DNA of 64,000 nucleotides from Rhodosorus marinus CCMP1338 (Eukaryota > Plantae > Rhodophyta). A program made the position numbers and the translations under genes. The DNA lies in contig JAMWBK010000009.1 of the NCBI GenBank assembly GCA_029953675.1, forward strand, positions 1 through 64,000, read 5' to 3'. Shown here in pieces: positions 1,801 to 63,613 of this stretch (the stretch's first letter is position 1; each line of letters opens with the position of its first letter). The notes below the pieces were generated by a model that saw nothing but the letters and a program-made list of their open reading frames with translations, was not told the origin of the DNA and made no database searches.

Positions 1801-2034
1801 TAGCCTAGGACTTGGGGAGTAAAAGAGGTGGCTCCGCAACAGAAAGAAGTCCAAAATCTGAGCAAAGCGTGGTATACGGGCGTGGCAAGCCACTAACCAA
1901 ACATAAACCCAGCCAGAAAAATATTTGTCACGAAAGCATCTAAAATTTAGATGCATCAAGTTGTTACACATGATAGAACAGATGCTATACTTGATCTTAG
2001 CCAAAAGGCCGAGAAGATCCTTATACTCCATTTG

Positions 2035-6798: not shown

Positions 6799-6848
6799 GC
6801 TATGCTAGTAAAGCCCAGTAAAGTCCAGTAGAGTCCAGTAAAGCCCAG
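6799..6848 (+). repeat. Four tandem 10-bp units (AGTAAAGYCC), a family A 3'-tail remnant
   Basis: gctatgct followed by agtaaagccc/agtaaagtcc/agtagagtcc/agtaaagccc; matches the family A terminus ggctatgctagtaaagtccagt. Confidence 0.75.
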
Positions 6849-7815: not shown

Positions 7816-7899
7816 GGCTGTATTACAATAATGCATCATATTGAGCGCCGTGTTTTTGGCGCTGCCAGTGTGCGTCAACACATGGAGGTGACGTTAGTC

Positions 7900-7941
7900 T
7901 GTAGACGGGGTCCGGGCGCGAGCGCCCGGACCCCGTCTACA
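7900..7941. repeat. Perfect 20-bp inverted repeat with a 2-nt loop
   Basis: tgtagacggggtccgggcgc-ga-gcgcccggaccccgtctaca. Confidence 0.95.
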
Positions 7942-8784: not shown

Positions 8785-9400
8785 GACACGTTCTGTATTC
8801 GAACGAATGGTTTAATCGGAGGCTGAAAAAAAAAACCCCGAGGGGAAAAAAGACTAAGCGCGGCGAAGTACTCGCGCCTCCAACATCAAAGCGGCATTCA
8901 TGCGCCACAGCAGGAAACTTAAGCGGGTAAACAACGATTGAAGACGGTCATGGCGTTCGCGGAACAACTCCCGAAGCCAGCGAGAACCAACAGAGTCCAT
9001 GAACCCAAAGCACTCAATGATCAGGGGTACCAAGCGATGTGCTAGTGGCCGAAGCACGAACACCAGGGGAAGACAAAGCCCCCGCGTATTTGATCTCTTT
9101 GCGGCGTCTCATGCTGGCGGCGGCAGATCCACGGCGCTCCCCCGCAGCCGGGAGATAACGACTAGCTCGAGGGTTAGGAACAGCAAGATCAACGTATGTG
9201 GTACGGCGGCTGTCGTCACAGGTGATCACCAGGTCGGCTACACGGCGTTCATCATTTTGAAAGTCCGCGACGGGTAAAGGTTTCTCGCGTTCGATTTCCA
9301 GACCGGCTTGCCGGACTATAGGCCGAAGTTCCCGGTATAACAGGTTCAAGATCCGTGTATGGCGGCGGGTTCGAGCACCTTTCTGTACTAACGCGTGTTG
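8785..9400 (-). mobile_element. RLE element family E, 3' fragment
   Basis: ORF 9014-9409 has RTRRH...RRVADLVIT...YVDLAV...KEIKY; homologous to 43390-43980. Confidence 0.85.
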
Positions 9401-9401
9401 G

Positions 9402-11395
9402 TGATCCAAAATAGTTCAAATTCCCTTTTAGACTACTATTATTAGCCCTGTCCGTACAATATCTTGTCCACTGAGCGCATCATAGACGTACACTATAATT
9501 TGTACCCATGGTGGTTATTTTTTTAGCTCACCAATATGTTTAGCCAGATGTCATGTCAGCACGTCACAACTCCTCCCCACTGCAAGAAAGAACTATCCGG
9601 TGGAAGAAGAAGCTGCCTTGTGGAGGTTTGTATAATACCGAATTCGTTTCTTGGTATTCTGGTTCTGCGGTAGTTGATGGTAGGGTAACCATCTCAAATC
9701 GTCCGTTGTTTCGCCTTCAAAGTAAACAAAGTATTTATTCAGGCCCTTTTCATCTAGACGATGTCCCAATACAGACTTCACTTCCCGTTGTGGTACTACT
9801 GGTTGTAGTACAGGAACTACGCGCGAGCCTTCAGGTTCAGGTCCATTGAACTTTCGTAATAGTGATACATGAAAAACATCATGCACCTGAGAATCCTCCC
9901 GTGAGCTCCAGCTTATATGCAACGTTACCAATTTTGCGTAGAATTTGAAACAGTCCGACATATCTGGGTCGAAAAACCTTTGAATCTGGTAATTGTAGAT
10001 TCCGCGTAGATAGTAGCACAAAATCGCCGGTTTGAAACTGAACGTCTTTCCTGCCTCGATCATAATAGAAGCGTTGGCGTTCTTGGGCATATCGTAGGTT
10101 GGCGCGGGCTAGGTCTCGTTGGTCTTGTTGTCGTTGTAACATAATGGTTGCGGCTTCAGGTAAAGACAATGAAGAGCCGCTAGCATCGGGGACTGTAAGA
10201 TCGGGAGATAAAGTCGGGTTCCTTCCGTAAAGCAACTCGAAGGGGGAAAACTTTGTAGACTCTGAAACTTGGCAGTTGTAGGCCAGCTCTGCCGTAGGAA
10301 GGTCGTCCGCCCAAGTTGTGGTTGTTGAATTACATCGCAGGTACGTTTCCAAGGTCTGGTTCGTTCTTTCTGTTTGTCCGTCTGATTGTGGATGGTAGGC
10401 AGTACTCAGCTTTTGTTTTACCTGCAGGAGCGTCATTAAATGGTTCCAGAAGATGCCAGTAAAACGTGAGTCGCGATCCGAGATGATGTCTTTTGGCACC
10501 CCTGCGAAACGGATCCAATGGCGTAGGAATAGTTCGGAGGCTTCTGGCGGAGCTTCTGGCGCAGTAACCTTAGTTGTGGTCGGGATGACGTACATCTCAG
10601 GTACGTCTCTAGGGTTTGATTTGTCCTCTCCGTCTGTCCATCCGTTTGGGGATGGTATGCAGTGCTTAAGTTTTGCTTGACCCCCATTAACTTCATCAGC
10701 TCCTTCCAGAAAAGTCCCGTGAATCGCGTGTCCCGATCTGAAGTGATATCGCTAGGGACTCCCGCGAACCGAACCCAATGATGGAGAAAGAGCCGTGCTG
10801 TTTCGTGCGCCGTCGCGGTTGTCCTTGTCGGTAGGAAACGGGCATACTTTGTGAACCGATCGACGATCACGAAGATCGCGTCGAACCCGTCCGATGTCAC
10901 AGGTAGGTTAGTAATAAAATCCATCGATACGGATTGAAATTTCCCGTCGGGAATTGGTAGTGGTTGTAATGTTCCTGCTGCAGTTCGTATTGGTTTTTGC
11001 CGCTGACAAATCTCGCGAGATTTAACCAATTCTTCTATATCTCCTTTCATGGTTGACCAGTAGTACTTCCTTTTCAACAGGTTCCTGGTTTTTGTAACGC
11101 CAAAGTGGCCACCCGTAGGTTCATCGTGATAGCTTCGTAAGAGGTCCGGTACGACACTCTCTGGTACGCAGAGCCGGTTATATAGGTACAGGCTATCTTT
11201 CCGTCGGATGAAGCCTTGTTGTCGGTATTGTTCGGGGTGTTCGTAAATGCGGCTGAACTCTGGATCACGTAGGTAGGCCGATGCCCATTCTTGTTGGCTG
11301 ACAACTTCAGATACGGCCAATTGTTGGATGGCATGACGACTCAACGCATCCGCTATATTTTCCGTCCCCTTCCGGTATTCGATTGTAAAGGTGTG
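9402..11395 (-). mobile_element. Ty3/gypsy (chromovirus-like) LTR retrotransposon fragment: RNase H end, integrase, chromodomain, PPT and 3' LTR
   Basis: TIEYRKG..N..ADALSR; HDEPTGGHFG zinc finger; SMDFIT...IVDRFTK, SDRD..F, TAYHPQTDGQTER core; HDVFHVSLLRK plus chromodomain-like tail. PPT ggggaggag at 9567-9575 is followed by a TG-starting LTR at 9565. Confidence 0.9.
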
Positions 11396-11692
11396 GCGTA
11401 CGGGGCAAATGGTACAAGAGTTCCTCCGCGACAGCTGCAAACACCTGCTGCACAGGAGTGAGGAGCTGAGAGACGTGAGATCCCAGATAAACCGGCAACT
11501 ATGGCGAGGTAACGCAGAGATAGCAGTAGGCGTTTTGCGAGTGGACCAGTTGGAGAATCCGCTGGTGCCTGTTTTTTCTTTTGAACGTAGCATGAGACCC
11601 CGGTAGCGGGGTTCCAGTAAGTTTCTCCCTAGATAGGATTAGACGTAGTGTTGCGCTGCAGTAGGCAGCTGCCCAGTAAAGCTTACGGTTAC
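11393..11692 (+). mobile_element. 5'-truncated family C RLE insertion (~300 bp), antisense within the gypsy pol
   Basis: Matches 32765-33060 (GQMVQEFLRDSCKHLLHRSEE...MRPR* plus 3' UTR). Confidence 0.9.
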
Positions 11693-11699
11693 ATTCACA

Positions 11700-21185: not shown

Positions 21186-21380
21186 CCAGGGTAACTGTAA
21201 ACTTTACTCGGCAACTGCCTAATGCAGCGCAACACTAATTCTATCAAGATCTAGGGAAAATGTGTGTTTAACCCCTGACTAACGTAACCGTAAGCTTTAC
21301 TGGGCAGCTGCCTACTGCAGCGCAACACTACGTCTAATCCTATCTAGGGAGAAACTTACTGGAACCCCGCTACCGGGGTC
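21185..21380 (-). repeat. Two stacked isolated 3' UTR/tail remnants (B-type ~85 bp, C-type ~110 bp)
   Basis: gtaaactttactcggcaactgcc... followed by taacccctgactaacgtaaccgtaagctttactgggcagctgcc...aaccccgctaccggggtct. Confidence 0.85.
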
Positions 21381-22168
21381 TAACCCCGTAGCCTTTATTG
21401 GGCAGCTACCTCATGTAGCGCATCACACGATCACTACGTACGCACTAACCAAACCTGGACTCCCTGTCCAGGAGTCTCATCTAAATTCTACTTAGGGGAA
21501 ATATCGGTCTATCTGCGCGATCTTTCTCGATCGCGTGCTCAACTAGCGCAGCATTGTGCTGCCACAAAATGCGGTTTAGTTGACCCCTCACCGACAATAG
21601 ATGGGAGTCACGATCATGCAGGTGCGCGCTCGCCGTTCGAAGAAATTCAAGGCTTGCCTGGCCCATTCCACCAAATGTCTCAAAAATGAACGGCACAAGA
21701 ACCACATCTCGGTTTTGCTCCCTCAGCACTTCCTTATAATGCAACGCCTTCGCTTGTTCGGCCTATTTCGCAGCATACCCTCAGTTCCAGCTCGTATGTC
21801 TCAACGGATGTCTTTGAAGTGGCGATGTCACCATCACATCCACCACGTACACGTATCCGCTCGTCGGGTGTCGTGCAACGATGTCTGGGCGAATTCCAGA
21901 CCCAGCAAAGAACCCCTGAGGCTCTACTTGTATCTCCGTGAAACTCCATAGGTGTAACCATCGACTCAGTTCCACCTGTAGCTCGTCGTGCCTCCTGGTT
22001 CGCATCCCTGATGAGGTCCTGCAGTGGTGCAGCCGCTGGATCCCACGCACATCGTGTGGTTGCTCGCAGACTGTGCACGTGTGTGACCGCCCTAGTCCTT
22101 GTAGTGGTAGCCCTAGAAGCATCCGCATGCTCCACAACATCTCATTTCGCGTCAACTGCCGCGGCCCT
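21380..22168 (-). mobile_element. Family D RLE 3' fragment with stop codons
   Basis: CTVC...HHCRTSSG..RRH, IRPDIV, VVDV, VPFIFETFG; same tail as the 12000 copy. Confidence 0.85.
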
Positions 22169-22480
22169 GTACTGGACTTTACTAGCATAGCCTGAAGCGC
22201 TACGCAAGGCGTGAAGATGAACTAATAACTAGGGAGGCAAGCATGCAACCCCAGGCGCCGATGGCGCGCCTCGGAAAGCATGTCGCTGGAATATCGCCAA
22301 AGGGAGACACTTAAACGCCTCAAGAGCGCCAAATATTCAGTAGGATGCTCAGCAAAACATTTCCGCAACCACTCTAAACCCGACTTATCCACGTGACCAA
22401 AGCTTTCCACAATGAATGGCTGGAACCGGTGAGAGCGACCCTCAGCGCAAGGCAGACTGGCCATGCTCTCAGCATACCTG
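22168..22480 (-). mobile_element. Family A 3' fragment
   Basis: Essentially identical to 13726-14030. Confidence 0.9.
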
Positions 22481-22750: not shown

Positions 22751-25700
22751 TTACCTCAGACTAACGTAACCGTAAACTTTACTGGGCAGCTGCCTACTGC
22801 AGCGTATCACTAGTGCTACTACTATCTAGGGAAAAGCTTAAGCTAACCCCGCTACCGGGGTCTAATGCTACGTTCGAAAGAAAAAACTGGGACCAGTGGA
22901 TTCGCCAACTGGTCCACTCGCAGAGCGCCTATCGCGATCTCCGCGTTCCCCTGCCATAATTTCCTGTTGATTTGAGCCCGAACATCGCTCAGTTCTAGGC
23001 TCCGGTGCAACAAATGCTTGCAGCTATCTCGTAGAAATTCTTGGGTCATGTGCCCTGTACGCCCAAAGCTCTAGATCGCAATCGGAATGAACATGTCTTC
23101 TGGCTTCTCTACGGACATAGCTTCTTTGTAATGCGCAAGTTTCCACCTCTCCGCTCTTTTTGCCGCATACCCGTTCTCTGACCCACTCCGGTTCACGTAT
23201 TTCTCCTGCAGTGGCGATGTAACCGTCACATCCAGCGCGTACGTTTGGAACGTCCTGGGATGAGTGGCAATGATATCTGGTCTTAGTCGGTAGTTCTCGA
23301 AGTACCCCTCCGGTTCTTGCTTCATGTCGATGAAATTCCAGCGATTCAGCCATCGCGCCAGCTCTGTACAGATTTCGTCATGCCTTCGCTGCCATAGTCC
23401 CGTCGATGTTGGGCAGTGGTGAAACCTTTGTACGCCATTAGTACCATGACTACTACCACAACTAGTACACTTCCCCGATGTCCGTATTCCCGGTATCGAC
23501 AAGCCCAACAGCTGTCGTACGTTCACTTGCAGTTCTGCTGTACTCAGTTTTTTTCGGCGCGAGCGTCGGCATTTCCCGTAACCACACTCCTGATCCGGCT
23601 CCAGCTGCGGACCTAATTCTGGCCCGATCTTCAGCCGAAATTTGTCCGTGGGATACCAGTCTTTGGAAAGCTGCATGGTGTGCCTCTCTGGAGAGGGTTT
23701 ATTGGATGGAACCATGTTTCCATGCTGGGGGGTCGGCTTGTTCTGCTCCTGGCGCGGTTTCGGTCCTCTGCGTCAGGGTGGCCAAGCTCCTGATTCGCTC
23801 TGGGGCGTCTGGGCGCAGTCTGCGTTGTGTTGCTGCTGCAGACTCGCGGATTTGGTCAGCAAGCTGTGCTGTCGACCTTTGGATTCTCCTCAGTGTGTGG
23901 TCGTCTGCAGGTGCCTCTGACGAAGATTGCGCTTGTACCTCGGTGAGGTATGGCCATTGCCCGTAATTACCTTTGAAACTTTCGTACCAGGCCGAGTAGA
24001 AGGCGATGGGCTGGATCCGTTGTCTCGTAGCGAGTCAAAGGCCTCCCCATCGACAGGGGAGTGCGATCTGGGCTTGTGTAGAGTTTTCGTAGTCAGGGTC
24101 CTCGGTGTCCGTAGTAGTGAGGCCTCCAAATAGCGTATCGAGGTGATAACGCGTCAGGGCGTCCGCTTCCCGTGCAAGTGTTCTTCCAAAGGGGTAGGCG
24201 AGGCTGCGTAGAAAGTAGTCTAGGCGGGGTTCAGAACAATACCCGAAGAGTGCCATTTTCGTATTCAGTTCCTCAGGGGGCAGGTGAATTATCTCCTTGA
24301 ATAGTTTCTCGTGGTTGTTTTGTATCTTCCGGCACTCGCTTTGGATGTAAGCGCGTGTTCCAATCGGAATGGAATGGATGGTAACTCCGTCTCGCGTTGC
24401 CGTGACGCCAGGGATGTCATGGCTGAGCAGTCGTGGCGTGGTCATCGTGTTGCCGTACAAGGTGCACTTGGCAAGCTGCAGTCGGGCTCCGAGTGAGGGA
24501 AGTAGTGCCTGGCCCCAGTGGAGTGAATCTTTCAGTAGTTGTAGCGGCCCTACGATGGTGATATCGTCGTGTATCGCCACAATGGTTAAATTAGGGGCTT
24601 TGTTGTGCAATGCTTCCAAGAAAGGCGCCAGGGAGAGCGCATGTAGGATTGGCCCTAGGGGATCTCCCTGTTGAACTCCCGTTGTGGCCCGAAGCGTCAA
24701 GCGATGGGTGTCGTCTTGGTCTGGACCTTGTTTGTCTCGCCATCCGAAGAGTGTAGGAGCATCCGTGCTGTCATTTCCGTAGCCAAGCCGGTACACGCCT
24801 TCAAGCTCGGGGAAATGGTGGTCCAGGATTTGCTTTGCAATGCGGCGGTCGATGCGGTTGAACGCATTCTCCAGGTCGAGCCGTAAGACGACGGCGTCAG
24901 GTTCACACGAGAGATGGGCCTGGATCGCGTGTAGTGATCGTTCACATCCACCTCTAACTCCGATGCCTAGTTGTAGAGGTGTGAGCAGTTCGGTGACGCG
25001 GTCGGTAACCGATCGAAGGATCCACTGTGTCGCCACCTTTCGGAGGACTTCGGGGACTCCAATCGGCCGGATGCCAGGTCTCGTTGCAGCGGTTGTGTTG
25101 CTCGTGGGTTTTTCGAACGGCAGTAATCTGCTGCTGCGCATTGCCCAGGTCATCGGGGGTGCAAACTTCTCTGGTGCCGTAGCTAGTTGCCGGAGAACGC
25201 GGATTAGAGCCACTTGGACGTCCTGAGTGGCCCCCTGCAGGTGTTCTGCTCGGAGTCCACTAGGTCCGGGGCTGGTACCTTGGGGAAGCCGGGCTATTAT
25301 CGCGAGAATACCTTCATCTGCTGCTTGTCGAGCATACCATCTTCTCCTGAGATTATCGGTGTCCTTGGAGAGCAGGAGTTGTAGGGCTTGGTCGACCTCC
25401 TCCGGTAGGGAACACTCCGTCGGGTCTGGAAAGAGTTCCTCCAATTGGTGCCACGTAGCGTTGGTAAATGGAGCCAGTTCGGTGGCCTGTAATCGTCGGG
25501 CCGCGTGTGAAAGGCGTCCGAGATGTGCCAATTTCAGGGCCTGTTTTCGGCGCCTTTGCGCCTGTTTCTGAGCTATCTCAGGTCCGCTTAGTGCCGTGCG
25601 AGGTGTCTGGTTGGAGGCGTACTCCTCGAGAGCAGTCCAAACTGTGTGAAACTCGCCTTCGAGTACGTGCGTGACCTGCGTGCCGATATGAAGAGCAGTA

Positions 25701-27620
25701 TACCCGAGGACCAATCCTGGGAGCCCGGAGAGGAAGAGGCTGGCATTCACTGGTGCGCTGCGGTCCATTGTGAGCTGGAGGGCGACCCGAAGGAGGCTGC
25801 TCCAGGCGTTGACGTGTGCGCGAGGCACGAAACCTCGAGTAGGGGCGGGACAGTGTGCGAGACGAGTCCACAACCAACCTCTGTCCGTGATATCGTTGAC
25901 GAAGACATTCCAGCGTTCAATCCAGTCCTGTCGCTTGGAGAAGAAAAGAGGCTCTTCCCGTCTGCGTTTGATTCCCCTACGTCGGTTCGGCATTATTGGG
26001 GGTTGTCTTCCTGACTTGTCTGGATGTCCATCGCATTATCGTGGGCTTCGGAGGGCGTCTGGGCATCGTTATCGCGCTGAGATGCTTCTGGGGCTGCGAG
26101 AGTCATCTCGGTGTCATGGCATGTGCCTGCCGCTGTCACGCGTGTGCGCTTCTGTTGGGGGGGGTCCGGAAAGTTGTGCGGGAGCTCGGCGTGTGGATTT
26201 TCCTCTTCGGCATCCACCTGTGGTAGTTGAGACGTGGCGCTGGAGTCACCCGAAGCGTCAACGGTCCCGCGGGCTTCCTGTGCGGCTCCGTCAGGAGCCG
26301 AGGCTTCTGGGGCTGCGTGTGTAGCTGCTGCAGTCTCAAGGGGTTCCACACTCTCCCCGGGGACCGCTGGTGGATGTTGTAGGCCATGTAACGCTCGTAG
26401 ACGCTCTTCTAGCGTCTCATGGATGGCTGCGAGAGTAGAGAACGACAGGTGTCTCTTTCCGAGCCTCGCGCGAATCCTGATGATCTGTTGTATGGCTCGT
26501 TGCAGCGTCTGGGCTGGGATATCCGCTGGGGTGATCCTTTGCCTTTCGTTGTAGCCCAACAGGTTGTCAGCCTCCAGTCCCTGTCCTGTGTGGAGGGTCA
26601 CTTGCCGGTCAGGAGGTCTCAGTGTGAACGATCCAAAGATCCCTGTTCTGAAAACGCCTCGAGCGATAGCGCTTTGTACAATCGGGATTGCATCCGGATG
26701 GCAGAGCAAACTTGCGTGTGATGAGATGAAATCCACATGCGCGATGTGAGAAGCTGGGATTCCCAGAGCGCGGCAGAGTACGGTGGTGAAGTCCGAAGGT
26801 GCCACATCATCCTGCCTTGGGGGGCGGACGTTTCGAAGGGTGGCAAGGATCGGTTTGGTCTCTGGTCCCCAGGTTGCTCCCTCCACCGTAGCGTGCAGCT
26901 GTCTCAGGGCTGCTTGCTGGGTCTGCGGCCCAGGGCGTCCTACTGTGCGGGTTGGTGCTGCTTCTCCGCGCACTGAGGCTGTCTGAGCCGTGCGCTCAGC
27001 GTAGGTAGGTTGTGCACTCCCATTCCCGATGACTGGGAAGGCCTCTGCGTAGTCCACTGGGACCGTGACACCTGTCCTGAGCGGAAGTTGATTGAGACGC
27101 GTTCCGGCTGCATGTTGATTGATGGCCGCCGCCGGCGGGTGCTGTTGCAGGATTTGGGAAGGGTTCGGTGCTGCGGCTCCACTGTGCCACATATAAGGTT
27201 CTGCTGAAAGCTCGGAGAGACGTGCGGTAATTCCTTCGAGTTCAATGGTGCTGTTAATCCGTGAGTAGAGTTTGAATACAGCCTTGTAGAAGTCCGCGAT
27301 AACTGCTTCGCCAATTCCCAAGTCCTGATAGCACCTGTCGAAGGCGCGAAGTTGGTGCAAAAAGACTGCCGCAGGTCCTGTTGCCTCTTGAGTCTCCATC
27401 CTGTAAGCCTCCTGTGTGTTCACTGCTTCGAAATCCTGGGTGCTTGTTGTCCTGCCGCTCGGTTCTGGCCTCCGACTCCCGTTCGGTGTCCCCACCCCCT
27501 CTTCGCCTGGGCGAGGGCCGTTGGTGCCCGGGTGGCGGAGAGGTGCTCGGTACTTTCCCAGCTTCTCCTTCTCGATCATAAAGCTTTCGTTAATAAAATC
27601 TCACAGTATAATTGTGCTTG
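22751..27620 (-). mobile_element. Full-length RLE non-LTR retrotransposon family B (ORF1 25993-27579; ORF2 from 25993 with nonsense mutations near 24035 and 23700)
   Basis: 528-aa ORF1; RT motifs IRPIG, LDLENAFNRI, GVQQGDPLGP, AIHDD; RLE CTSC..HHC..RRH, LRPDI, ALDVTV, KLAHY; 3' UTR and tail. Confidence 0.93.
25993..27579 (-). CDS. Family B ORF1 (intact, 528 aa)
   Basis: Open frame homologous to family C ORF1 (FLHQLR.FDRCYQDLGI, LRNVRPP); its TAA overlaps the ORF2 ATG. Confidence 0.85.
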   Translation of the reverse strand: MIEKEKLGKYRAPLRHPGTNGPRPGEEGVGTPNGSRRPEPSGRTTSTQDFEAVNTQEAYRMETQEATGPAAVFLHQLRAFDRCYQDLGIGEAVIADFYKAVFKLYSRINSTIELEGITARLSELSAEPYMWHSGAAAPNPSQILQQHPPAAAINQHAAGTRLNQLPLRTGVTVPVDYAEAFPVIGNGSAQPTYAERTAQTASVRGEAAPTRTVGRPGPQTQQAALRQLHATVEGATWGPETKPILATLRNVRPPRQDDVAPSDFTTVLCRALGIPASHIAHVDFISSHASLLCHPDAIPIVQSAIARGVFRTGIFGSFTLRPPDRQVTLHTGQGLEADNLLGYNERQRITPADIPAQTLQRAIQQIIRIRARLGKRHLSFSTLAAIHETLEERLRALHGLQHPPAVPGESVEPLETAAATHAAPEASAPDGAAQEARGTVDASGDSSATSQLPQVDAEEENPHAELPHNFPDPPQQKRTRVTAAGTCHDTEMTLAAPEASQRDNDAQTPSEAHDNAMDIQTSQEDNPQ

Positions 27621-27622
27621 TT

Positions 27623-28118
27623 CCCAGACTAACGAAACCGTAAACTCTCGTCAGAGTAACGTAACCCCAGAAAAAACAGGCACCAGCGGATTCTCCAACT
27701 GGTCCACGCGCAAAGCGCCTAGCGCTATCTCTGCGTTACCTCGCCATAGTTGCCGGTTTATCTGGGATCTCACGTCGCTCAGCTCCTCACTCCTGTGCAG
27801 TAGGTGTTTGCAGCTGTCGCGGAGGAACTCTTGTGCCATTTGCCCCGTACGCCCAAACGTCTCTATCGCTATCGGGATGAACTTGTCATCCGGTTTCTCG
27901 ATCACCATCGCTTCCTTGTAGTGAGCGATTTTCCACTTCTCCGCAGCTCTCGCCGCGTATCCGCTATCATCTTGGCTCCGCCGCAAATAGTTTCCCTGTA
28001 ATGGTGACACCACGGTCACATCCAGCGCATACCTTTGTTTGGTCCTCGGATGCCTAGCGACGATATCAGGTCGCAGTCCGTAGTTCTCGAAGTACCTCAG
28101 GTTCTTGCTCTACGTCCG
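27623..28118 (-). mobile_element. Family C 3' fragment lacking its 3' UTR, capped by telomere-like units
   Basis: Matches C ORF2 up to gtgcctgttttttct, then ggggttacgttactctg. Confidence 0.85.
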
Positions 28119-28123
28119 TGAAA

Positions 28124-31100
28124 TCTGGGGTAAAGTGTACACGGTAAAAAGGTAAAGTTCGTACGGAAGACAACAACAAAAGTTCGTAAGAAAGTTCGAA
28201 GATGATCGTGAGGGAGGTACGCGGGCCGTACCCCGAACCTCTTGTCATTCAGGGCCCGGACCCCTCGGGCACCCGGGAAGTTTTGCAAAGGCACCAGCAC
28301 CAGTCTGATGGCGACGTGCAGGAGACACCAACGGAACCACAAGCAGGCAATGTTCAAGCAAGAACGCGGACCGAGTCTGCAGCCGCAACCGACCCGGCAG
28401 CCACATTCTTGCATCAACTGCGTAGCTTCGACAGATGCTACCAGGACCTGGGCATCGCTGCGTCCGAAATTACAGACTTCTACAAAGCCGTTTTTCAACT
28501 GTACTCGAGGGTCAACAGCTCGCAAGAGCTGCAAGGTGTCACCGGACGCCTTACGGAGTTGTCCCGGAAACCGGGTATGTGGGAAGGTGGAGCCGCTACT
28601 ACGAATTCTGCACCATTTCCGCATGATCTCCCGCGAGATCTCCCGCGACAGGCCGTAGGCAACCACCTCGGCCCCGAAACCCCTTACCGTAACGGTCGTC
28701 TGCCAGGAAGTTATGCCGTCCATGATTTAGGAACCCGGCTCCCTGCGCCCCAGGGAGGGACAGGTGTCCGGGATCTAGGACACCATGCGGAGACATTCCC
28801 AGCCATCGGGGAGGGCCCTACAAGGCCAACCTTCGCCGATTTCGCAGCACAAAAAGAACCAGCGAGAGGAGGAGATGCTCGTTCCAGAACTTGTGGACGC
28901 CCTGGACCCCAGACCCAACAGGCTGCCCTACGGCAACTGCACGCTACGGTCGGGGGGTCTGGCTGGGGACCCGATGTTGCTCCAGTCCTCGCGACGCTAC
29001 GGAATGTCCGACCCCCAAGGCTGGATGAGGTGGCCCCTGCGGAGTTTGCAACGGTTCTTTGCAGAGCACTGGGTATGCCCAGCTCTTATGTGGTGCATGT
29101 GGACTTTATTGCCTCCCATGCCTGCCTGCTGTGCAATTCCGATTCTCCAAAGTGCCATCTCCCGAGGAGTTTTCCGGACTGGGATATTCGGATCCTTCAC
29201 ACAACGACACGCCGATAGACAAGTCAGCCTTTACACTGGCCAGGCGCTGGACCCAGACAACCTTCTGGGTTACCTCGAACGTCAGACCATCGCTCCCGGG
29301 GATATTGCTGCCCACACGCTGAAGCGGGCCATCGAGCAGCTTGTCCGCATTCGTTCGAGGATCCGCAGGCGACAACTCTCCTTCCACACTCTCGCAGCGC
29401 TCTACGAGTATCTGGAGGCACGACTAGAGCTCCTAAAACGCAGACAACATCCGCCTGAGGTACCCGGGGAGTGCGCGGAACCCCCGGGGCCTGCAGCCGC
29501 TTCGAACGCAGACCCTGAAGCCTCGTCCCTTCCAGGGGATGTACAGGCAGACCGTGGGACAGTTTGACGCCCAGGTTGAGACTAGCGCGACTTCCCAAGT
29601 ACCTGAGAACGCAGCACACGAGGACAATCCCCATGCGGAGCTCCTCTGCAACCTTCCGGAGCCACCTCAACAGAAGCGCTCGCGAGTATCCGCCGATGGA
29701 ACCGGACCGGATACTGAGATGACTCCGGCAGCCGTGGAGACTCCACCGGATACCACTGTGATACAGGTTGCCCTTGACGGCAACCATCACGCGATGGACA
29801 CGCAGGAGAGCCAGGAAAACCCAGCGCAAGAATGCCGAGCAGACGTAGGGGAATCAAACGACGCCGCGACGAGCCTCTGTTCTTCTCGGATCGTCAAGAC
29901 TGGATCAGGCGGTGGAGCGTCTTCGTCGACGACGTCACGGAAGGAGGCAGGCAGTGGACGCGCCTTACACACTGCCCGGTTCCCACACGGCGATTTGTGC
30001 CACGCGCCCAGGTTCAAACATGGAGCTGCCTCTTCCGTGCTGCATTAGAGCTCTCTATGGACAGCACCGCACCAACAAACGCCAGCCTGCTTCTTGTCGG
30101 ACTTCCAGGCCTGGTCCTTGGACACTCTGCACTTGATGTTGGCATTCAGGTATCGCATGTGCTTGAAGGAGAATTCTCTACGGTCTGGAGCGCTCTAGAG
30201 GACAAGGCGTCTATGCTGTCGCATACTACCGCACCGCAAGGAGCTGAAGCGGTTCGACGCAAACATCTCGGGCGCCACAAGCGAGCGCTGAAACTAGCAC
30301 ACCTTGGCCGCCTTTCAGATGCAGCTCGGAGCCTACAGGCCACCGAAATGGCACCTTTTACCGCGGCTACGTGGAGGCAACTACAAGCGCTCTTTCCCAA
30401 CCCGGCGGAAGGTGACTTACCAGACGAGATTGCACACGCCCTGCAATCTTTGCTCGCTCTGAATACCGAAACACTAAAGCGGCGGTGGGATTCAAGAAAA
30501 GCTGCCGACGAGGGCCTCATGTCGATCGTGGCACGTCTTCCTCAGGGCAAGAGCCCAGGTCCTAGCGGTCTCCGAGCGGAACACCTCCAAGGTGCATTTC
30601 AACAGACGCAAGTGGCGTTGATTCGTGTATTGCGACAACTGGCGACCGCTCCTGAGAAATTTTCCCCAGCTCTGACCCGCGCCCTTCGCAGTAGTTGACT
30701 CCTGCCGTTCTCGAAGCCTAACAAGGGTTCAGTGCCGCAGGAGCATCCCGGAGTTCGCCCTATCGGAGTACCAGAAGTTTTGCGCAAGGTAGCAACGCAA
30801 TGGACTCTTCACGCGGTTATGGACAGGGTGCGTGAGCTCCTGGTGCCCTTACAACTGGGTATTGGAGTAAATGGCGGGTGCGAACGCTCACTTCACGCGA
30901 TCCAGGCCCATTTGTCATGCGCACCCGATTCGGTGGTCCTTCGGCTAGACCTAGAGAATGCCTTTAATCGCATCGACCAACGCCTTGCCAAGCAACTGGT
31001 GGACGAACACTTGCCGGAGCTTGCACCAGTGTATAGACTTGGCTATGGAAGCGACAACGCGGACTCACCGACGCTCTGTGGCTGGCGATCTTCCCCGGGA

Positions 31101-33064
31101 CAGAACGAAACCGACACCTCTCGCCTGACTCTCCAAGCAACTACAGGAGTCCAACAGGGAGATCCACTGGGGCCGGTGCTACATGCACTATCCCTGGCGC
31201 CCTTTCTAAGAGCGTTGCGAGCCAAGTTCCCCAACGAAACGATTGTTGCTATCCACGACGATATCACGATTGTCGGGTCGCTACAAGCCGTGAAGGCGTC
31301 CCTGGCATGGGCAAAAACTGTGCTCCCCTCTCTTGGAGCACGCCTGCAACTCGGCAAGTGCACTGTGTACGGGCGAACACTGACTACCACGCGAGTGGTC
31401 AACCATGAGATTCCTGGAGTGCAAGTGACCAGAGACGGAGTCACCATCCACTCGATACCGATAGGCGGCCGAGAATATATCGAACAGGAGTGCCGGGGGT
31501 TGCAAAATAAGCATGAGAAACTCTTTGAGGAAATTGCCAAGCTCCCACAACCGGAGCTTACGACGCAAATTGCCCTCTTCAGGTTCTGTGCGGAAACGCG
31601 ACTAGACTATGTGCTACGATGCCTCGCATACGAGTTTGGAAGAAATCTGGCACGCGAGGCCGACGTGATGACCAGATATCACCTGGAAATTCTATTCGGA
31701 GGCCTCTCGCTACGACAGCTGTAGAGGACGACGAGTACGCAGAGCTGATCTCGGACCAAATCCCTCTGCCCTGCCGCTGGGGAGGTTTGGGTTTCGCTAC
31801 TCGAAAGCGCGTCCAACCCATCGCGTTTTACTCGTCATGTAGAAACACCTTCCGGAACAATGAAGATGAATGGCCATACCTGACTGAACTAGAGCGGGAG
31901 GTTACGGCAGAACGCTCACCAGACACATACGAGCCGATGGATCAACGATGGTCGACTGCACAGCTGGCGGACCAGATCTGTGCATCGTCGCGAGCAATAC
32001 AACGGAGGCTCGGACCAGAAACCCCACCGCGGATCTTGGCACTGACTACCCTGCAACAACCGCGCGAAATGTCTCTTCGAAGCGCACCGGGCGAGACTGC
32101 AGCTTGGAATAATGGTTCAATACAACAAACCCTCTCTCGAGAGGCACACCATTGTGCATTCCAAAGCTTGGTCACCAACCCACGAATCTCCACTGAAAAC
32201 CGAGCTCGAATACGGTCCGCCGCGGGATCCGGGTCGGGAGTCTGGCTGCGTGAAGTACCAACGCTGACACCGAAAAAATTGAGTGCGGTTGAGATGCAGG
32301 TAAACGTTCGACAACTGCTGGGTCTGCCAATTCCGGGATTGCGGACCACCGAGAAGTGCACTAGTTGCCGGAGTAAACACGGAAGGACTGGGGTACAACG
32401 GTTTCATCACTGCCCAACATCAACTGGACTGTGGCAACGTAGGCATGACGAAATCTGCAGAGAGCTGGCACGGTGGCTAAGGCGATGGAACTTCATGGAC
32501 GTAGAGCAAGAACCTGAGGGGTACTTCGAGAACTACGGACTGCGACCTGATATCGTTGCTAGGCATCCGAGGACCAAACAAAGGTATGCGCTGGATGTAA
32601 CGGTGGTGTCACCATTACAGGGAAACTATTTGCGGCGGAGCCAAGATGATAGCGGATACGCGGCGAGAGCTGCGGAGAAGTGGAAAATCGCTCACTACAA
32701 GGAAGCGATGGTGATCGAGAAACCGGATGACAAGTTCATCCCGATAGCGATAGAGACGTTTGGGCGTACGGGGCAAATGGCACAAGAGTTCCTCCGCGAC
32801 AGCTGCAAACACCTACCGCACAGGAGTGAGGAGCTGAGAGACGTGAGATCCCAGATAAACCGGCAACTATGGCGAGGTAACGCGGAGATAGCACTAGGCG
32901 CTTTGCGCGTGGACCAGTTGGAGAATCCGCTGGTGCCTGTCTTTTCTTTTGAACGTAGCATGAGACCCCGGTAGCGGGGTTCCAGTAAGTTTTTCCCTAG
33001 ATAGGATTAGACGTAGTGTTGCGCAGCAGTAGGCAGCTGCCCCGTAAAGCTTACGGTTACGTTA
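28124..33064 (+). mobile_element. Full-length RLE non-LTR retrotransposon family C (ORF1 from 28202; ORF2 29832-32974, disrupted at 30696 and ~31710)
   Basis: ORF1 MIVREVRG...; RT VRPIG, LDLENAFNRI, GVQQGDPLGP, AIHDD; RLE CTSC..HHC..RRHD, LRPDIV, ALDVTV, KIAHY, IAIETFG. Confidence 0.93.
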
Positions 33065-34850
33065 CCTCAGACTAACGTAACCGTAAGCTTTACGGGGCAG
33101 CTGCCTACTGCTGCGCAACACTACGTCTAATCCTATCCAGGGAAAAACTTACTGGAACCCCGCTACCGGGGTCTCATGCTACGTTCAAAAGAAAAGACAG
33201 GCACCAGCGGATTCTCCAACTGGTCCACGCGCAAAGCGCCTAGTGCTATCTCCGCGTTACCTCGCCATAGTTGCCGGTTTATCTGGGATCTCACGTCTCT
33301 CAGCTCCTCACTCCTGTGCGGTAGGTGTTTGCAGCTGTCGCGGAGGAACTCTTGTGCCATTTGCCCCGTACGCCCAAACGTCTCTATCGCTATCGGGATG
33401 AACTTGTCATCCGGTTTCTCGATCACCATCGCTTCCTTGTAGTGAGCGATTTTCCACTTCTCCGCAGCTCTCGCCGCGTATCCGCTATCATCTTGGCTCC
33501 GCCGCAAATAGTTTCCCTGTAATGGTGACACCACGGTCACATCCAGCGCATACCTTTGTTTGGTCCTCGGATGCCTAGCAACGATATCAGGTCGCAGTCC
33601 GTAGCTCTCGAAGTACCCCTCAGGTTCTTGCTCTACGTCCATGAAGTTCCATCGCCTCAGCCACCGTGCCAGCTCTCTGCAGATTTCGTCGTGCCTACGT
33701 TGCCACAGTCCAGTTGATGTTGGGCAGTGATGAAACCGTTGTACCCCAGTCCTTCCGTGTTTACTCCGGCAACTAGTGCACTTCTCGGTGGTCCGCAATC
33801 CCGGAATTGGCAGCCCCAGCAGTTGTCGAACGTTTACCTGCATCTCAACCCCACTCATTTTTTTCGGTGTCAGCGTTGGTACTTCACGCAGCCAGACTCC
33901 CGACCCGGATCCCGCGGCGGACCGTATTCGAGCTCGGTTTTCAGTGGAGATTCGTGGGTTGGTGACCAAGCTTTGGAATGCACAATGGTGTGCCTCTCGA
34001 GAGAGGGTTTGTTGTATTGAACCATTATTCCAAGCTGCAGTCTCGCCCGGTGCGCTTCGAAGAGACATTTCGCGCGGTTGTTGCAGGGTAGTCAGTGCCA
34101 AGATCCGCGGTGGGGTTTCTGGTCCTAGCCTCTGTTGTATTGCTCGCGACGATGCACAGATCTGGTCCGCCAGCTGTGAAGTCGACCATCGTTGATCCAT
34201 CGGCTCGTATGTGTCTGGTGAGCGTTCTGCCGAAACCTCCCGCTCTAGTTCAGTCAGGTATGGCCATTCATCTTCATTGTTCCCGAAGGTGTTTCTCCAT
34301 GACGAGTAAAACGCGATGGGTTGGACGCGCTTTCGAGTAGCGAAACCCAACCCTCCCCAGCGGCAAGGCAGAGCGATTTGGTCCGAGATCAGCTCTGCGT
34401 ACTCGTCGTCCTCTACAGCTGTCGTAGCGAGGCCTCCGAATAGAATTTCCAGATGATATCTGGTCATCACATCCGCCTCGCGTGCCAGAGTTCTTCCAAA
34501 CTCGTATGCGAGGCATCGTAGAACATAGTCTAGTCGCGTTTCCGCACAGAACCTGAAGAGGGCAATTTGCGTCGTAAGCTCCGTTTGTGGAAGCTTGGCA
34601 ATTTCCTCAAAGAGTTTCTCATGCTTATTTTGCAACCCCCGGCACTCCTGTTCGATATATTCTCGGCTGCCTATCGGTATCGAGTGGATGGTGACTCCGT
34701 CTCTGGTCACTTGCACTCCAGGGATCTCATGATTGACCATTCGCGTGGTAGTCAGTGTTCGCCCGTACACAGTGGAGTTGCCGAGTTGCAGGCGTGCTCC
34801 AAGAGAGGGGAGCACAGTTCTTGCCCATGCCAGGGATGCCTTCAAGGCTT
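33065..34850 (-). mobile_element. 5'-truncated family C copy joined tail-to-tail to the preceding element
   Basis: ORF 33163-34845 is the reverse-complement match of ~31290-32974. Confidence 0.93.
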
Positions 34851-35139
34851 GTAGTGATGGACGCTGTCCTTGAATAGAGTAGGCCGCACAATTCCATTTT
34901 TCACGCGTTAGTGCAAGTGCGACTCACAACTGTGCGGCGGGCACCTATTGGATTCATTTCATTTGCACTGGGATCTGAACTGCTTATGAACTCCATGCAC
35001 GACTAACTCATCTTCAGCGGTGAACTGGCAGTGGATTACCCTGTTTCTTCGATTCGTTAACCACGAGGCAACTATTTCAGATACATTGCCCAGAACGGAA
35101 TGTCCTCTACCTGGGGTTGCCAATGCCCTAAAGTGCAAA

Positions 35140-35230
35140 AATTGTAAAGCGTAAAAATTGTAAAGTGGAAATAGTGTAAAGTGTTAAATGTGTAAAGTGC
35201 TAAAAGTGTAAAAAGTGTAAAGTGAAAATA
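35140..35230. repeat. Degenerate minisatellite built on GTAAAGTG/TAAAAATT
   Basis: aaagtgcaaaaattgtaaagcgtaaaaattgtaaagtggaaatagtgtaaagtgttaaatgtgtaaagtg... Confidence 0.7.
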
Positions 35231-35591
35231 GTCAGGGCGCAGCGCTGCACATTGACAGTTCTGTCAAACTCCGAGATACACAGCTCTTGCAGTCTACGGT
35301 GACAGTAGAGAGCGCATCATCTTGCAAGAAAAATGCTGGGGTGGGGTTTGGTCCGCCATCTTGGCGATTGGAAGCAAGGAAGTACGTGGGTTACTTCGGG
35401 GTCGCAGACTGGCTTTTAGACCGGAAAGTACCTGGAACCTGCAAGAAAACGCATCAACGGCAGTTTCGCATCCCATACATGACACTCCGTTTAGCCAATG
35501 CAGTTAACAAACAGTGCAGAGCTTAGTCAATTCTACTCCCTCACTAAATCAGAGATCGACGTCGTGATACTGGCTTGCGAGTGATATCTCT

Positions 35592-35658
35592 TCCCTAGTT
35601 ATTAGTTCATCTTCACGCCTTGCGTAGCGCTTCAGGCTATGCTAGTAAAGTCCAGTCC
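35592..35658 (+). mobile_element. 67-bp 5'-truncated family A insertion with a 12-bp target-site duplication
   Basis: Insert equals the family A 3' end; flanked by agtgatatctct at 35580-35591 and 35659-35670. Confidence 0.92.
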
Positions 35659-42479: not shown

Positions 42480-43980
42480 TCCGTCGGTTGCCTCGTGGCT
42501 TCCTGCATTGCTCGTCGTTGCTTTGTCGATATTGCTGCAGTCAGCGGCTCACCTAGTGGTTCCGCTCGCTCCCGACTCAGCGGGTCGGTGGCTGGCAACC
42601 CGTGCCGACGACGAGAGCTTTGGTGAGCTGTGATACTTCTTAGATGAGGAGTTGGGTCATCTTCCGCGCCCCACCCGTGATATCGTTCGTGCCCAATTGG
42701 GCCTACCCCTACGTCTGGGCCGTCTAGACCTCTGTAAACCGAGCTGTTATCCAACCAGCGGCCGTGGTCGGGTCTTGGGGGACCGCCCTCCCTACTTGAA
42801 CGCGTTGAGCGTGTCCAGTTTCCGAAATTTGGAGGTCAGTCTTTCCAGTGGTGATCTACACTCTAGTGCCCCTGAAAGTCCCTGTGGTTTGTTTCTCGAG
42901 GTGCAATCGGCGAAGTCATCATCTGTACCAGTCTCCCTGCCGACCTGCACATACGCTGGCCGGCTGACGAGCCGTTATTGCGCGGGCTCGCTGCCCCGCG
43001 AGCCGACCAGCAGCCAGTCCTGTACCTCCCGCGCTTGATCTTGTGGTGGCTGGGGAAACAGACTTCCCTCGCGATCCTCCTCATGATGGACCAGGCTCTT
43101 GTAGTCGCGTCCCCGCACGCACGGATGAGTTGCAAAACACCTTTTCTTTGGACTTTTCGCGCGGATGGTCTCATTTTCCCGACATCGCGCCCGCCTGCGT
43201 AGTCTTGGGGGTTGTATTAGATCTCAGTGGCTCATGACCGTCCCCGCTTTTCCGCCACTAAATGACACTCACAGATTGCGAAGTGCGCACTTCTCGGCGC
43301 TTCTTGCATCGGCCGCCCGGGCCTTCCGAGATGGGTTCGCCGTGCCCCTATGCTCTCAGAACGAAGACACAGCGTATTTTGGCACCCACATGCTCACCAG
43401 CTGCCCCGCTGTGAAAGACGCCCGAACCCGCCGACATATGCGGATCTTGAACCTCCTATACCGCGAACTTCGGCCTATCGTACGGCAACCAGGTCTTGAA
43501 AGTGAACTTGAGAAGCCCCTGCCTGTCGCAGACTACCAAAATGATGAACGCCGCGCGGCTGACCTCGTGGTCACCTGTGACTATAGCCGCCGTACGACGT
43601 ACGTTGATCTTGTTTCCCCAATCCCCAGGCTATTTACCGGCTGCGGGAGAGCGCGGTGGATTTACTGCTGCCAGTATGAGACGTCGCAGAGAGTTGAAAC
43701 ATGCGGGTGCTTTGTCTTCCCCAGGCATTCGTATTCGGTTCTAGCTCATCTCCTGGTACCTCTGGTCATTGAGTGATTTGGGTTTATGGACTCCGTTGGT
43801 TTTCGTTGGCTTCAGGAAGTGTTCCGCGAACGCCCTGACCGTCTGTCCCCGGTGTTTACCCGTTTTAAGTTTCTTGCTGTGGCGTATGAACGCTGCTTTG
43901 GTGTTGGAGGCGCGCGATCTTCGCCGCGCTTAGTCTTTTTTTTCCCCTCGGGGGTTGCTCTTTCAGTTTCGGATTAAGCA
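42480..43980 (+). mobile_element. Degenerate family E RLE element (ORF2 C-terminal half and tail)
   Basis: RAQLGLPLRLG; HMLTSC....RTRRH; RRAADLVVT..YVD; tail cttagtcttttttttcccctcgggg. Confidence 0.8.
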
Positions 43981-62919: not shown

Positions 62920-62941
62920 GTAACCCCAGACTAACGTAACC
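62920..62941 (+). other. Solo telomere-like motif with terminal redundancy (GTAACC-CCAGACTAAC-GTAACC)
   Basis: One 16-bp unit plus 6 bp; exact complement of the family B/C tail consensus. Confidence 0.8.
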
Positions 62942-63613
62942 GCGTACACTTACCCCCAACTGCAGGTAGGCCCTGAGAGTTCCTTTACAGAGCGGTTTCT
63001 AGTCGAGACTTTGGGACAAGGCATTGATGGGATGCGCGGACCTCGAGGGCTGAGTTGCAAGAGTGCACGCTCAGAGCGTGATCTACACGATACTATGTGG
63101 CTTGTCACACCTCCACCCAGTTGGTGACGATGTGTGGTCCCTTTCCAATCTAGCCTCTGCGTAGCAGCACCTTCCCTCGCTGTCCAAAAAGGCAGGACGC
63201 CACAATCACATACGGTGATTGTACATTGGACCGGAAACACTATGGTAGAAAACTTTCATCAGCTATCCGCGAGGTTGTTCCATACGCTTTGAGGACCCCA
63301 TCAATAAAGACAGACATGATAAACCCACAATGTTCTCTCGTTGCTGCCACCCCCATCCGTACCCGAGTAACCCACAACTCTAACACAGTTGGATGTGCAC
63401 GCCGAGCTTTTGATCGATGTTTATCGTGTTCGGGATTGTCACAGGAGCGCGGCCCACTTTCGAATGTCCGGATTCTTTAGTACGGAGCACATTTGAGTGT
63501 GTTTGCACTTGAAACGGTGTGGAGTAATTGATCGTGTTCAAATTTCTAATGACCACGTCGGATTGAAAGATCGGCTACCTTGTTTTCGAAAAGCTCGGTT
63601 TTTACGTTCAGAG

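Follow-up and report, generated by a model that had tools for sequence, protein, structure and literature searches.

The window analysed here is a stretch of 64,000 nucleotides from the red alga Rhodosorus marinus CCMP1338. Its first part (1-34857) is an array of non-LTR retrotransposons, nearly all of them on the minus strand, and ordinary host genes occupy 35-64 kb (DUF1499, ANTH, ABHD18, and an MFS sugar transporter). Within the array, ORFs, the Pfam RVT_1 match, and a tblastn map delimited a full-length family B element on the minus strand (22757..27622). It presents a 5' UTR (27580-27622), ORF1 (25993-27579, with the ATG at 27579), and ORF2, which contains the reverse transcriptase and runs from 25993 down; its tail reads ...tttacGGTTAC followed by GTTAGTCTG (22757-22771). 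This element lies on the telomere side of a 454-bp piece of family C ORF2 (27669..28122, minus strand), called fragment F from here on.

On the other side of fragment F there is a full-length family C element in inverted orientation (28125..33064, plus strand). Its 5' end, CTGGGGTAAAG..., adjoins F at the 5' break of the latter; the last bases of its tail are ...cttacGGTTACGTTA. Next to the host DNA lies a 5'-truncated family C copy (33068..34857, minus strand), with its tail followed by GTTAGTCTG and AGGTAAC. The latter two copies form a 1.8-kb palindrome, with 98.3% identity overall and near-identity close to the centre. We considered a fold-back origin for the inverted element and rejected it: a TAAC:GTTA snap-back would suit the centre, but one arm is full length and the other, beside host DNA, measures 1.8 kb. 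For this reason, we prefer an independent inverted insertion followed by gene conversion. Further along the array, a family C tail that we call tail b (21275..21391, minus strand) starts at gaccccggtag, which is 16 nt after the break of F in element coordinates.

ORF2 encodes a reverse transcriptase of the non-LTR type (Pfam RVT_1, E=3.4e-10), and its best sequence matches in the PDB are LINE-1 ORF2p and R2 proteins. When aligned, the C-terminal 190 residues display an invariant Cys/His knuckle together with RRH(D/E)E, RPD, and D-V-x-V; the invariant positions of the domain are C43, C46, H50, H60/C61, R70-R71-H72, P106-D107, and D122. The model of this domain had a mean pLDDT of 59.5 (72-85 in the core), and its top fold matches were the R2 proteins 9dou, 9nl2, 8gh6, and 8ibz (prob 0.98-0.99, E 1e-3 to 4e-2), followed by PD-(D/E)XK restriction enzymes, all with borderline scores. 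The modelled fold suggests, at this borderline level, non-LTR retrotransposons with an R2-like zinc knuckle and a PD-(D/E)XK endonuclease. The nearest proteins come from Rhodosorus marinus and from an MMETSP transcriptome. RepeatMasker assigned 9.04% of the R. marinus genome to LINE/CRE, the dominant LINEs (supplement of PMC10250338), and it is solely from this label that we take the CRE affinity of the elements. A second kind of element in these arrays, the A-type, presents tails ending in (AGTAAAGYCC)n and is also found at non-telomeric sites with short target duplications.

Fragment F was defined by self-BLAST, mapping to the full-length copy, alignment with five further copies, and the ORF ends. 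In the 4940-nt family C element it covers positions 4368-4823; it is truncated at both ends and has a 2-nt deletion. Its identity to the adjoining family C element (28125-33064, plus strand) and to the third copy (33068-34857) is 97.6-97.8%. The minus strand from 27680 to 27652 reads gtgcctgttttttct/ggggttacgttactctg, where the slash marks the junction (as it does below). The 3' end of F, ...cctgttttttct, is 8 codons short of the ORF2 stop. Intact family C copies go on with ttt gaa cgt agc atg aga ccc cgg TAG (ORF2 ending in ...VPVFSFERSMRPR before the stop); the loop of an ACCCCGG/CGGGGU hairpin contains this TAG, and a UTR of ~90 nt follows, ending in ...aaagcttacGGTTAC. Compared to these copies, F lacks 113 nt comprising the last codons, the stop, the hairpin, and the UTR. 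The original prediction had described a family C fragment that stops inside ORF2 without stop codon, hairpin, and UTR, and the alignment confirms it. Among ~12 B/C-type fragments in the window, F is the only one truncated at the 3' end. Its 5' break stands head-to-head with the inverted full-length family C element, and CTGGGG lies beside that end too.

The sequence that follows F belongs to a 16-nt repeat, and this repeat is found in tandem at a chromosome end of the same alga. The terminal 465 bases of R. marinus contig JAMWBK010000007.1 consist of 29.1 tandem copies of GGGGTTACGTTAGTCT, with 99% matches. A search with the ORF1 protein retrieved NDN08_004843 of R. marinus, whose locus (L002) is 5-26 kb away from this contig's end, and the contig end itself (L003) was reached through a neighbouring single-exon gene; the evidence for the tandem array thus comes from one chromosome end. 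Positions 4-468 of L003 are the last bases of JAMWBK010000007.1 (2,212,799 bp) and read inward as CCCAGACTAACGTAAC. Outward, the G-rich strand runs 5' to 3' as (GGGGTTACGTTAGTCT)n, and this is also the strand of the elements' sense. Going outward along the contig, the host genes give way to a 16-kb array built from the same kinds of element, with their sense outward, and the array gives way to the repeat. The window mirrors this layout, with host genes on one side and all the canonical elements pointing away from them. The A-type elements of the window match those of that contig at 97-99% identity, as closely as copies inside the contig match one another, which places the window in this species or one very near to it.

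The 16-mer GGGGTTACGTTAGTCT is the Rhodosorus telomere repeat and not part of the element. The terminal array rules out that it belongs to the element UTR or represents a non-telomeric target. Other candidates were also discarded: for a known RNA gene as target (snRNA, spliced leader, or rRNA), Rfam gave nothing at the motif and only a U2 gene elsewhere, and for a hammerhead or HDV-like ribozyme, which CTGACGAG had suggested, there was no match. Within the window, GGTTACGTTAGTCTG occurs 9 times with up to 3 mismatches vs. 1.0 expected, and runs of at least 2 full 16-mer units are absent, as are TTAGGG, TTTAGGG, and AATGGGGGG. The 19-mer and the endonuclease profile had no matches in metagenome, viral, and prokaryote contigs. 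At F, the polarity is the one of the chromosome end: the sense-strand 3' end bears the repeat, with the G-rich strand running from the host genes (35-64 kb) toward coordinate 1, and the minus strand at the junction reads ...ttttctGGGGTTACGTTA.

The R. marinus genome paper states that contigs end in telomeres and does not give the motif (PMC10250338). The published red-algal telomere motifs, AATGGGGGG in Cyanidioschyzon and TTTATTAGGG in Galdieria, are both unlike the 16-mer. Outside the Cyanidiales, red-algal telomeres have been called 'recalcitrant to standard analysis', with no telomerase activity and no signal from known probes, and three other red algae gave negative results in TRAP assays run with other primers (PMC3622300). 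We found no description of the 16-mer motif in the searchable literature, and the use of a 16-nt telomere unit, undescribed there, by mesophilic red algae of this class is well supported.

The elements insert at a fixed position of this repeat. In families B, C, C2, D, and G, the 3' UTR invariably ends in ...tac(G/A)GTTAC (...tacGGGGTTA in family D). Seven tails run on into GTTAGTCTG, of which six lie in the window and in L001 (a transcript contig of a relative with elements at 67% amino-acid identity), and more cases come from L003. After GTTAGTCTG there is often (G)GGTTA and then a 5'-truncated element; L001 displays the same pattern as cgTTACGTTAGTCTGGGGTTAt/5'-truncated element. Six other tails stop at GGTTAC against unrelated DNA or another element, and these short tails beside non-repeat DNA imply that GGTTAC is encoded by the element and GTTAGTCTG is not. 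The 3' junction is therefore fixed at GGTTAC/GTTAGTCTG of the repeat in the window, L001, and L003, where the tail of the last element runs into the 29-unit terminal array. The sense strand coincides with the G-rich one in all copies but two, those at 28125-33064 and 11395-11695; both inverted copies end with the short form ...GGTTAC. At the 5' side, junctions follow GGGTTA(C), GTTA, or GTTAGTCTG, some of them with short inverted telomere pieces. The 15-nt GTTAGTCTGAGGTAA that brackets 22751-33062 is suggestive of a target duplication, but variant units of the GGTAAC type recur in L001 and L003.

From this anatomy, the endonuclease would nick the C-rich strand at CTAAC^GTAACC, and the RNA-terminal GGUUAC, which is the same as the G-strand there, would position the template. 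Reverse transcription would then produce ...tacGGTTAC/GTTAGTCTG and rebuild a full unit at every 3' junction. A rebuilt unit means that the site can be hit again, which would explain the head-to-tail stacks, the GGTTAC-ended tails located before another element, and the inserts of 11-22 nt.

Repeated insertion into such sites raises the question of whether F was simply split by a later arrival. An older family C copy could have been divided near the end of ORF2, at the target-like ttGAACGTAGCATGAg, by a 6.3-kb read-through unit (27668 down to 21392), so that the missing tail would be tail b (21275-21391) and 16 nt would have been lost at the site. Tail b is indeed of family C type and starts 16 nt after the break of F, 6.3 kb along the array; GGGGTTA is found at both the start and the end of the block, and multi-element read-through transcripts exist (L001). 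Against this, GGGGTTA followed by a 5'-truncated element is the normal junction here, and short 5'-truncated tails after GGGGTTA are common (70, 102, and 11-22 nt), tail b being explained as one more of them. Moreover, the unusual variant GTTAGTCTGAGGTAA at both 22751 and 33062 argues that the block was built in place. We regard such a split as highly improbable.

At the junction behind F, an in-register window scan located a 15-nt exact match to the telomere repeat, TCT/GGGGTTACGTTA, i.e. TCTGGGGTTACGTTA (27657..27671, minus strand). The TCT (27669-27671) is common to ORF2 and the repeat and may be a seed or a microhomology, and 27657-27668 is repeat only, so there are 12 new telomeric bases, or 15 counting the overlap. 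About 1.6% of random joins would present such an in-register 3-nt overlap. The next 23 positions (27634..27656, minus strand) are a miniature retrotransposon insertion in the telomere unit, recognised by the recurrence of a 12/13-mer and by tail alignment. It consists of the 12-mer CTCTGACGAGAG (27645-27656; 13 nt with the preceding A) and TTTACGGTTTC (27634-27644), the final 11 nt of a family B/C2-type tail. After it, at the usual GGTTAC/GTTAGTCTG 3' junction, comes GTTAGTCTGGG (27623..27633, minus strand), the remainder of the interrupted telomere unit and the first bases of the next one.

The 12/13-mer CTCTGACGAGAG occurs elsewhere only at L003rc 14021, where it starts a 5'-truncated element behind telomere units; GGGGTTACGTTACTCTGACGAGAG in the window equals its L003 counterpart minus an 18-nt palindrome. 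Its presence at a chromosome-end junction of R. marinus explains the apparent G-to-C mismatch of the first reading. The original prediction was right that the tct/gggg microhomology is in phase with the repeat, and overstated how far the repeat extends: it had counted 17 telomeric bases, of which we retain 12, since 'ctctg' and the next 18 bases are the mini-insertion. The element tail end located 24 nt beyond the break of F has the gTttac of the B/C2 form, whereas family C tails have gCttac (5/5), so it is not the tail of F itself. A simple deletion onto F's own tail with no extra unit, the outcome that had been named as contradicting the prediction, is discarded by this tail type and by the G count (it would leave two G's and four are seen). 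When the insertions are removed, the tract behind F becomes (TCT)GGGGTTAC GTTAGTCTG GG..., a normal telomere start.

Junctions of the same kind are present near the real chromosome end. In L003, an A-type element retains 1.1 kb from its 5' UTR and is cut in ORF1 as ...gccaagtaCCTGG/GGTTACGTTAGTCTG, followed by 4.5 units. Three intact A-type copies read ...gtaCCTGGaggcc vs. ...gtaCCTGG up to the break in the cut copy, which gives a seed of 4 nt (CTGG) in register. A B/C-like element, likewise interrupted within ORF1, follows about 540 nt closer to the end and reads ...ccctcgggagc/TTAGTCTGGGGTTACGTTAGTCTG (...gggagc/TTAGTCTGGGGTTAC...). Both have lost kilobases of 3' sequence, and with younger elements outside them they are now 3.1-3.6 kb from the chromosome end. 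Small deletions are no explanation for losses of this size; break, telomere addition, and renewed insertion account for both junctions directly. Together with F, these two elements cut in ORF1 bear out the claim that the motif can attach without the element UTR, and they are further truncated copies with in-phase repeat, one of them with a verified seed.

These junctions, located in an independent public contig, also speak against an assembly chimera at F. The region is a repeat-rich array whose repeats are 70-98% similar, a setting prone to such an artefact, but the 44 nt separating F from the family B element are unique in the window, and the register and overlap are those expected of a biological join. 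We find a chimera barely credible.

We conclude that the junction of F probably arose by a chromosome break followed by de novo telomere addition on a TCT seed, and then by new insertions. A 5'-truncated family C copy would formerly have been at or near a chromosome end, which would have broken or eroded 113 nt into the 3' end of the copy. A telomerase-type enzyme may then have aligned its template on ...TCT-3' and added GGGGTTACGTTAGTCT... in register. Later insertions in the new tract, presumably the mini-insertion first, then family B, and then the elements beyond, would have split it and shifted the junction at least 27 kb inward. Several observations favour this healing: the repeat is telomeric, the polarity fits, the overlap is in register, and L003 holds precedents. 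Besides, taking out the insertions leaves a normal telomere start behind F, and the tail end close by is not F's own. This is in line with Magnaporthe, where capped and later internalised truncated telomeric retrotransposons are documented (PMC7367193). Telomerase-like healing with later internalisation, as originally proposed, is thus the best-supported reading on the grounds of polarity and L003, and it stops short of proof at F, where a deletion from TCT to TCT gives the identical sequence. With one interrupted unit left behind F, addition is indistinguishable from loss.

Such a microhomology deletion would have joined the TCT of ...ttttct to the TCT ending the first unit (...GTTAGTCT), removing 129 nt and adding nothing. 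F would have started as a 5'-truncated copy with its own tail and ~2 telomere units, before a later break or replication slip. This yields the exact sequence seen, with register and overlap automatic; tails with 1.4 units are known elsewhere (21275-, 62920-, and L001 2198), and interstitial telomere tracts are known break sites (PMC7367193). However, there is no trace here of the required pre-existing structure, and a 3-base homology at a distance of 129 nt is a weak substrate for slippage. It also leaves the two L003 junctions, which lost kilobases, unexplained. We consider this deletion unlikely as the origin of the junction.

The inverted neighbour suggests another route, in which the junction is coupled to retrotransposition. 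In one form, twin priming, the inverted element (28125-33064) would have inserted in a telomere tract, and a second cDNA would have been primed from the C-strand 3' end ...GTAACCCCAGA (...CCCCAGA) at a UCU of the same RNA, leaving F as an inverted 5' appendage. In the other form, the 5' joining step of the downstream insertion would have removed the tail of F through the TCT microhomology. F belongs to the family of the inverted element, lies exactly at its 5' end in the opposite orientation, and matches it at 97.6%, vs. ~96% for other family C copies. CTGGGG abuts both ends of F, the head-to-head join suggests a coupled rearrangement, and other L003 5' junctions bear short inverted telomere pieces. 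Nevertheless, twin priming does not typically leave a full-length direct segment with a 454-nt overlap, as seen here with F, and the inverted copy and its palindrome partner have common derived bases that are absent from F. A common 'TCTGGGG' RNA start is unsupported, as the 5' leaders of families B and C are not significantly similar (829/2000 shuffles scored as well). Finally, the 3'-truncated elements of L003 have no inverted partner. A coupled origin appears quite unlikely.

Under the preferred reading of a healed chromosome end, the enzyme that built the repeat could still be of another kind. The elements' own reverse transcriptase, rather than a canonical telomerase, might copy the repeat-bearing 3' end of an element or read-through RNA onto free 3' ends. 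The tails ending in 6 nt of the repeat, the tail inserts of 11-22 nt, and the absence of a telomerase signal in published red-algal assays leave room for this, and we hold it to be very unlikely. If true, these red-algal ends would be intermediate between telomerase-built telomeres and the retrotransposon-built telomeres of Drosophila.

The closest described system is that of MoTeR1 and MoTeR2 in Magnaporthe oryzae. These are non-LTR elements whose endonuclease is restriction-like; they target telomere repeats, always in one orientation, and form head-to-tail arrays with short interstitial telomere tracts between them (PMC7367193). In the MoTeR relics, de novo telomere addition at a short seed has capped truncated copies, and the resulting junctions were later internalised (PMC7367193). 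Both systems are alike in telomere targeting, endonuclease type, arrays, seeded capping, and internalised junctions. They differ in polarity: MoTeR 5' ends face the chromosome end and healing occurs at 5' truncations, whereas in Rhodosorus it is the 3' ends that face outward, the sense strand that is extended, and 3' truncations that are healed. In addition, the MoTeR repeat is TTAGGG, compared to 16 nt in a red-algal host here, and the tracts between elements of the window reach at most 1.4 units.

SART1 and TRAS1 of Bombyx mori insert at a single nucleotide position of the telomere repeat and in a single orientation, and target-matching sequence at the 3' end of their RNA determines where reverse transcription begins. 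They have an AP-type endonuclease and poly(A) tails. The Rhodosorus elements share the fixed site and orientation with them and differ in the R2-type endonuclease suggested by the domain model and in the lack of poly(A), in place of which their 3' end, ...tacGGTTAC, mimics 6 nt of the repeat. CRE1/CRE2, SLACS, and CZAR resemble the Rhodosorus elements in having two ORFs, a C-terminal zinc knuckle and PD-(D/E)XK nuclease (a candidate assignment on our side), and strict site specificity, but they target the spliced-leader RNA genes of trypanosomatids instead of the telomere repeat.

De novo telomere addition is known from yeast, ciliates, Plasmodium, and humans, where telomerase extends a non-telomeric 3' end in register using a template match of 1-4 nt. 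Compared to this general chromosome healing, the substrate at F is a retrotransposon ORF and the repeat unit has 16 nt. Long, complex telomere units (16-25 nt) are found in budding yeasts such as Candida and Kluyveromyces, in lineages and with sequences unrelated to the Rhodosorus 16-mer. For a long unit to be reiterated perfectly, the template in the telomerase RNA should be long too. In Drosophila, HeT-A, TART, and TAHRE, non-LTR elements that are 5'-truncated to variable extents, are stacked head-to-tail at the chromosome ends, and broken ends are healed (PMC5537684). There is no telomerase repeat there, and healing consists of the attachment of an element with its 5' end outward, whereas in Rhodosorus a simple repeat caps the ends and the elements are guests.

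The type of event, a break that is then capped, was thus already known from MoTeR relics. What is new to the searchable literature is the lineage and the repeat: a 16-nt telomere repeat of a mesophilic red alga, colonised by CRE-like elements. One lineage of the red algae that have been refractory to telomere assays gains a concrete motif, GGGGTTACGTTAGTCT at a Rhodosorus chromosome end, and this repeat is colonised by site-specific retrotransposons that make up ~9% of the genome. Read as healed ends, the junction at 27669 and its two L003 counterparts are footprints of break-and-heal cycles and show how the subtelomere grows here. The seeds and registers of these junctions allow the telomerase RNA template to be predicted and searched for, and TRAP primers, Southern probes, and telomere checks of assemblies can now be designed for these algae.

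The end of R. marinus contig JAMWBK010000007.1 (locus L003, positions 1-468) is made up of a 16-nt unit repeated 29 times in tandem, which reads GGGGTTACGTTAGTCT on the outward strand. This unit appears to be the Rhodosorus telomere repeat, and no occurrence of the motif was found in the literature searched.

Close to this chromosome end, two retrotransposons broken within ORF1 run in register into telomere repeats (L003 3549-3632 and 3020-3070, or 13423-13506 and 13985-14035 in reverse-complement coordinates). Both are internal, at 3.1-3.6 kb from the end. We verified a 4-nt seed, CTGG, at one of the two junctions; the second of these tracts terminates in a perfect palindrome of 18 nt, GTCTGGGGTAACCCCAGAC.

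The A-type elements (window 6807-6848, 35590-35656, and 22171-22478; 18528-18616 in L002, the locus 5-26 kb from the end of the same contig) share 26-35% amino-acid identity with the family B and C elements, and terminate in tandem 10-nt repeats, (AGTAAAGYCC)n. They insert outside telomere repeats too, with target duplications: AGTGATATCTCT for the insertion at 35.6 kb, and ACAG for a 308-nt fragment nested within a family D copy.

The sequence across the inner edge of the R. marinus array in L002 (10236-10260) reads ...ggttTTACGTCCGGGGTTACGTGCGGGAG, with a 12-nt telomere-like variant repeat where unique DNA meets the first element. In the window, a minisatellite with a 16-nt period, GTAAAGTGNNAAANNT, lies 270 nt beyond the array border (35129-35230, plus strand) and is preceded by CTGGGGTTGCC; the minisatellite resembles the 5' leader of the inverted full-length family C element over the leader's first 35 nt. 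An isolated relic, GGGGGTAAGTGTACGCGGTTAC followed by GTTAGTCTGGGGTTAC, sits in gene-rich surroundings at 62920-62960 (minus strand), 130 nt beyond the stop of a sugar-transporter gene, and corresponds to the final ~17 nt of the kind of tail that adjoins the real telomere in L003, followed by 1.4 telomere units. Finally, a repeat common to 8801-9383 and 43413-43977 terminates abruptly at 7818 (region 7818-7941, plus strand), where the break is followed by 68 nt, by the telomere-like GGTGACGTTAGTCTG, oriented opposite to the array, and by a perfect palindrome with a 19-bp stem, GTAGACGGGGTCCGGGCGC/GCGCCCGGACCCCGTCTAC.

A complete U2 snRNA sequence (126 bits; window 1824-2020, minus strand; flanks 1661-2034) is located 14 nt behind a family G tail (...cacGATTAC|aaatggagtataag). 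An A-type element starts, with its 5' UTR, ~50 nt downstream of the U2 sequence. This arrangement could be a U2-LINE chimera formed by template switching, or an insertion beside a U2 gene. A Ty3/gypsy-type LTR retrotransposon remnant (9593-11593, minus strand), with integrase zinc-binding and core domains and a Tf2-type SH3, is nested in the array and adjoins an inverted family C tail of 301 bp (11395-11695).

A variant, GTTAGTCTGAGGTAA, follows the tails at 22751 and 33062 (minus strand), its only two sites in the window. The copies enclose the inverted family C element, the 3'-truncated 454-bp family C fragment, the miniature insertion behind it, and family B. They represent either a target duplication of 15 nt or a variant form of the telomere unit that recurs. 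The inverted element also forms, together with a 5'-truncated copy, a 1.8-kb palindrome (31275-34857, centre 33065-33067), in which an 8-nt loop, GTCTGAGG, separates the arm ends GGTTACGTTA and TAACGTAACC. Since the arms are ~95% identical at their outer ends and become nearly identical toward the centre, where the final ~460 columns contain a single mismatch, the alignment suggests that the palindrome arms underwent gene conversion.
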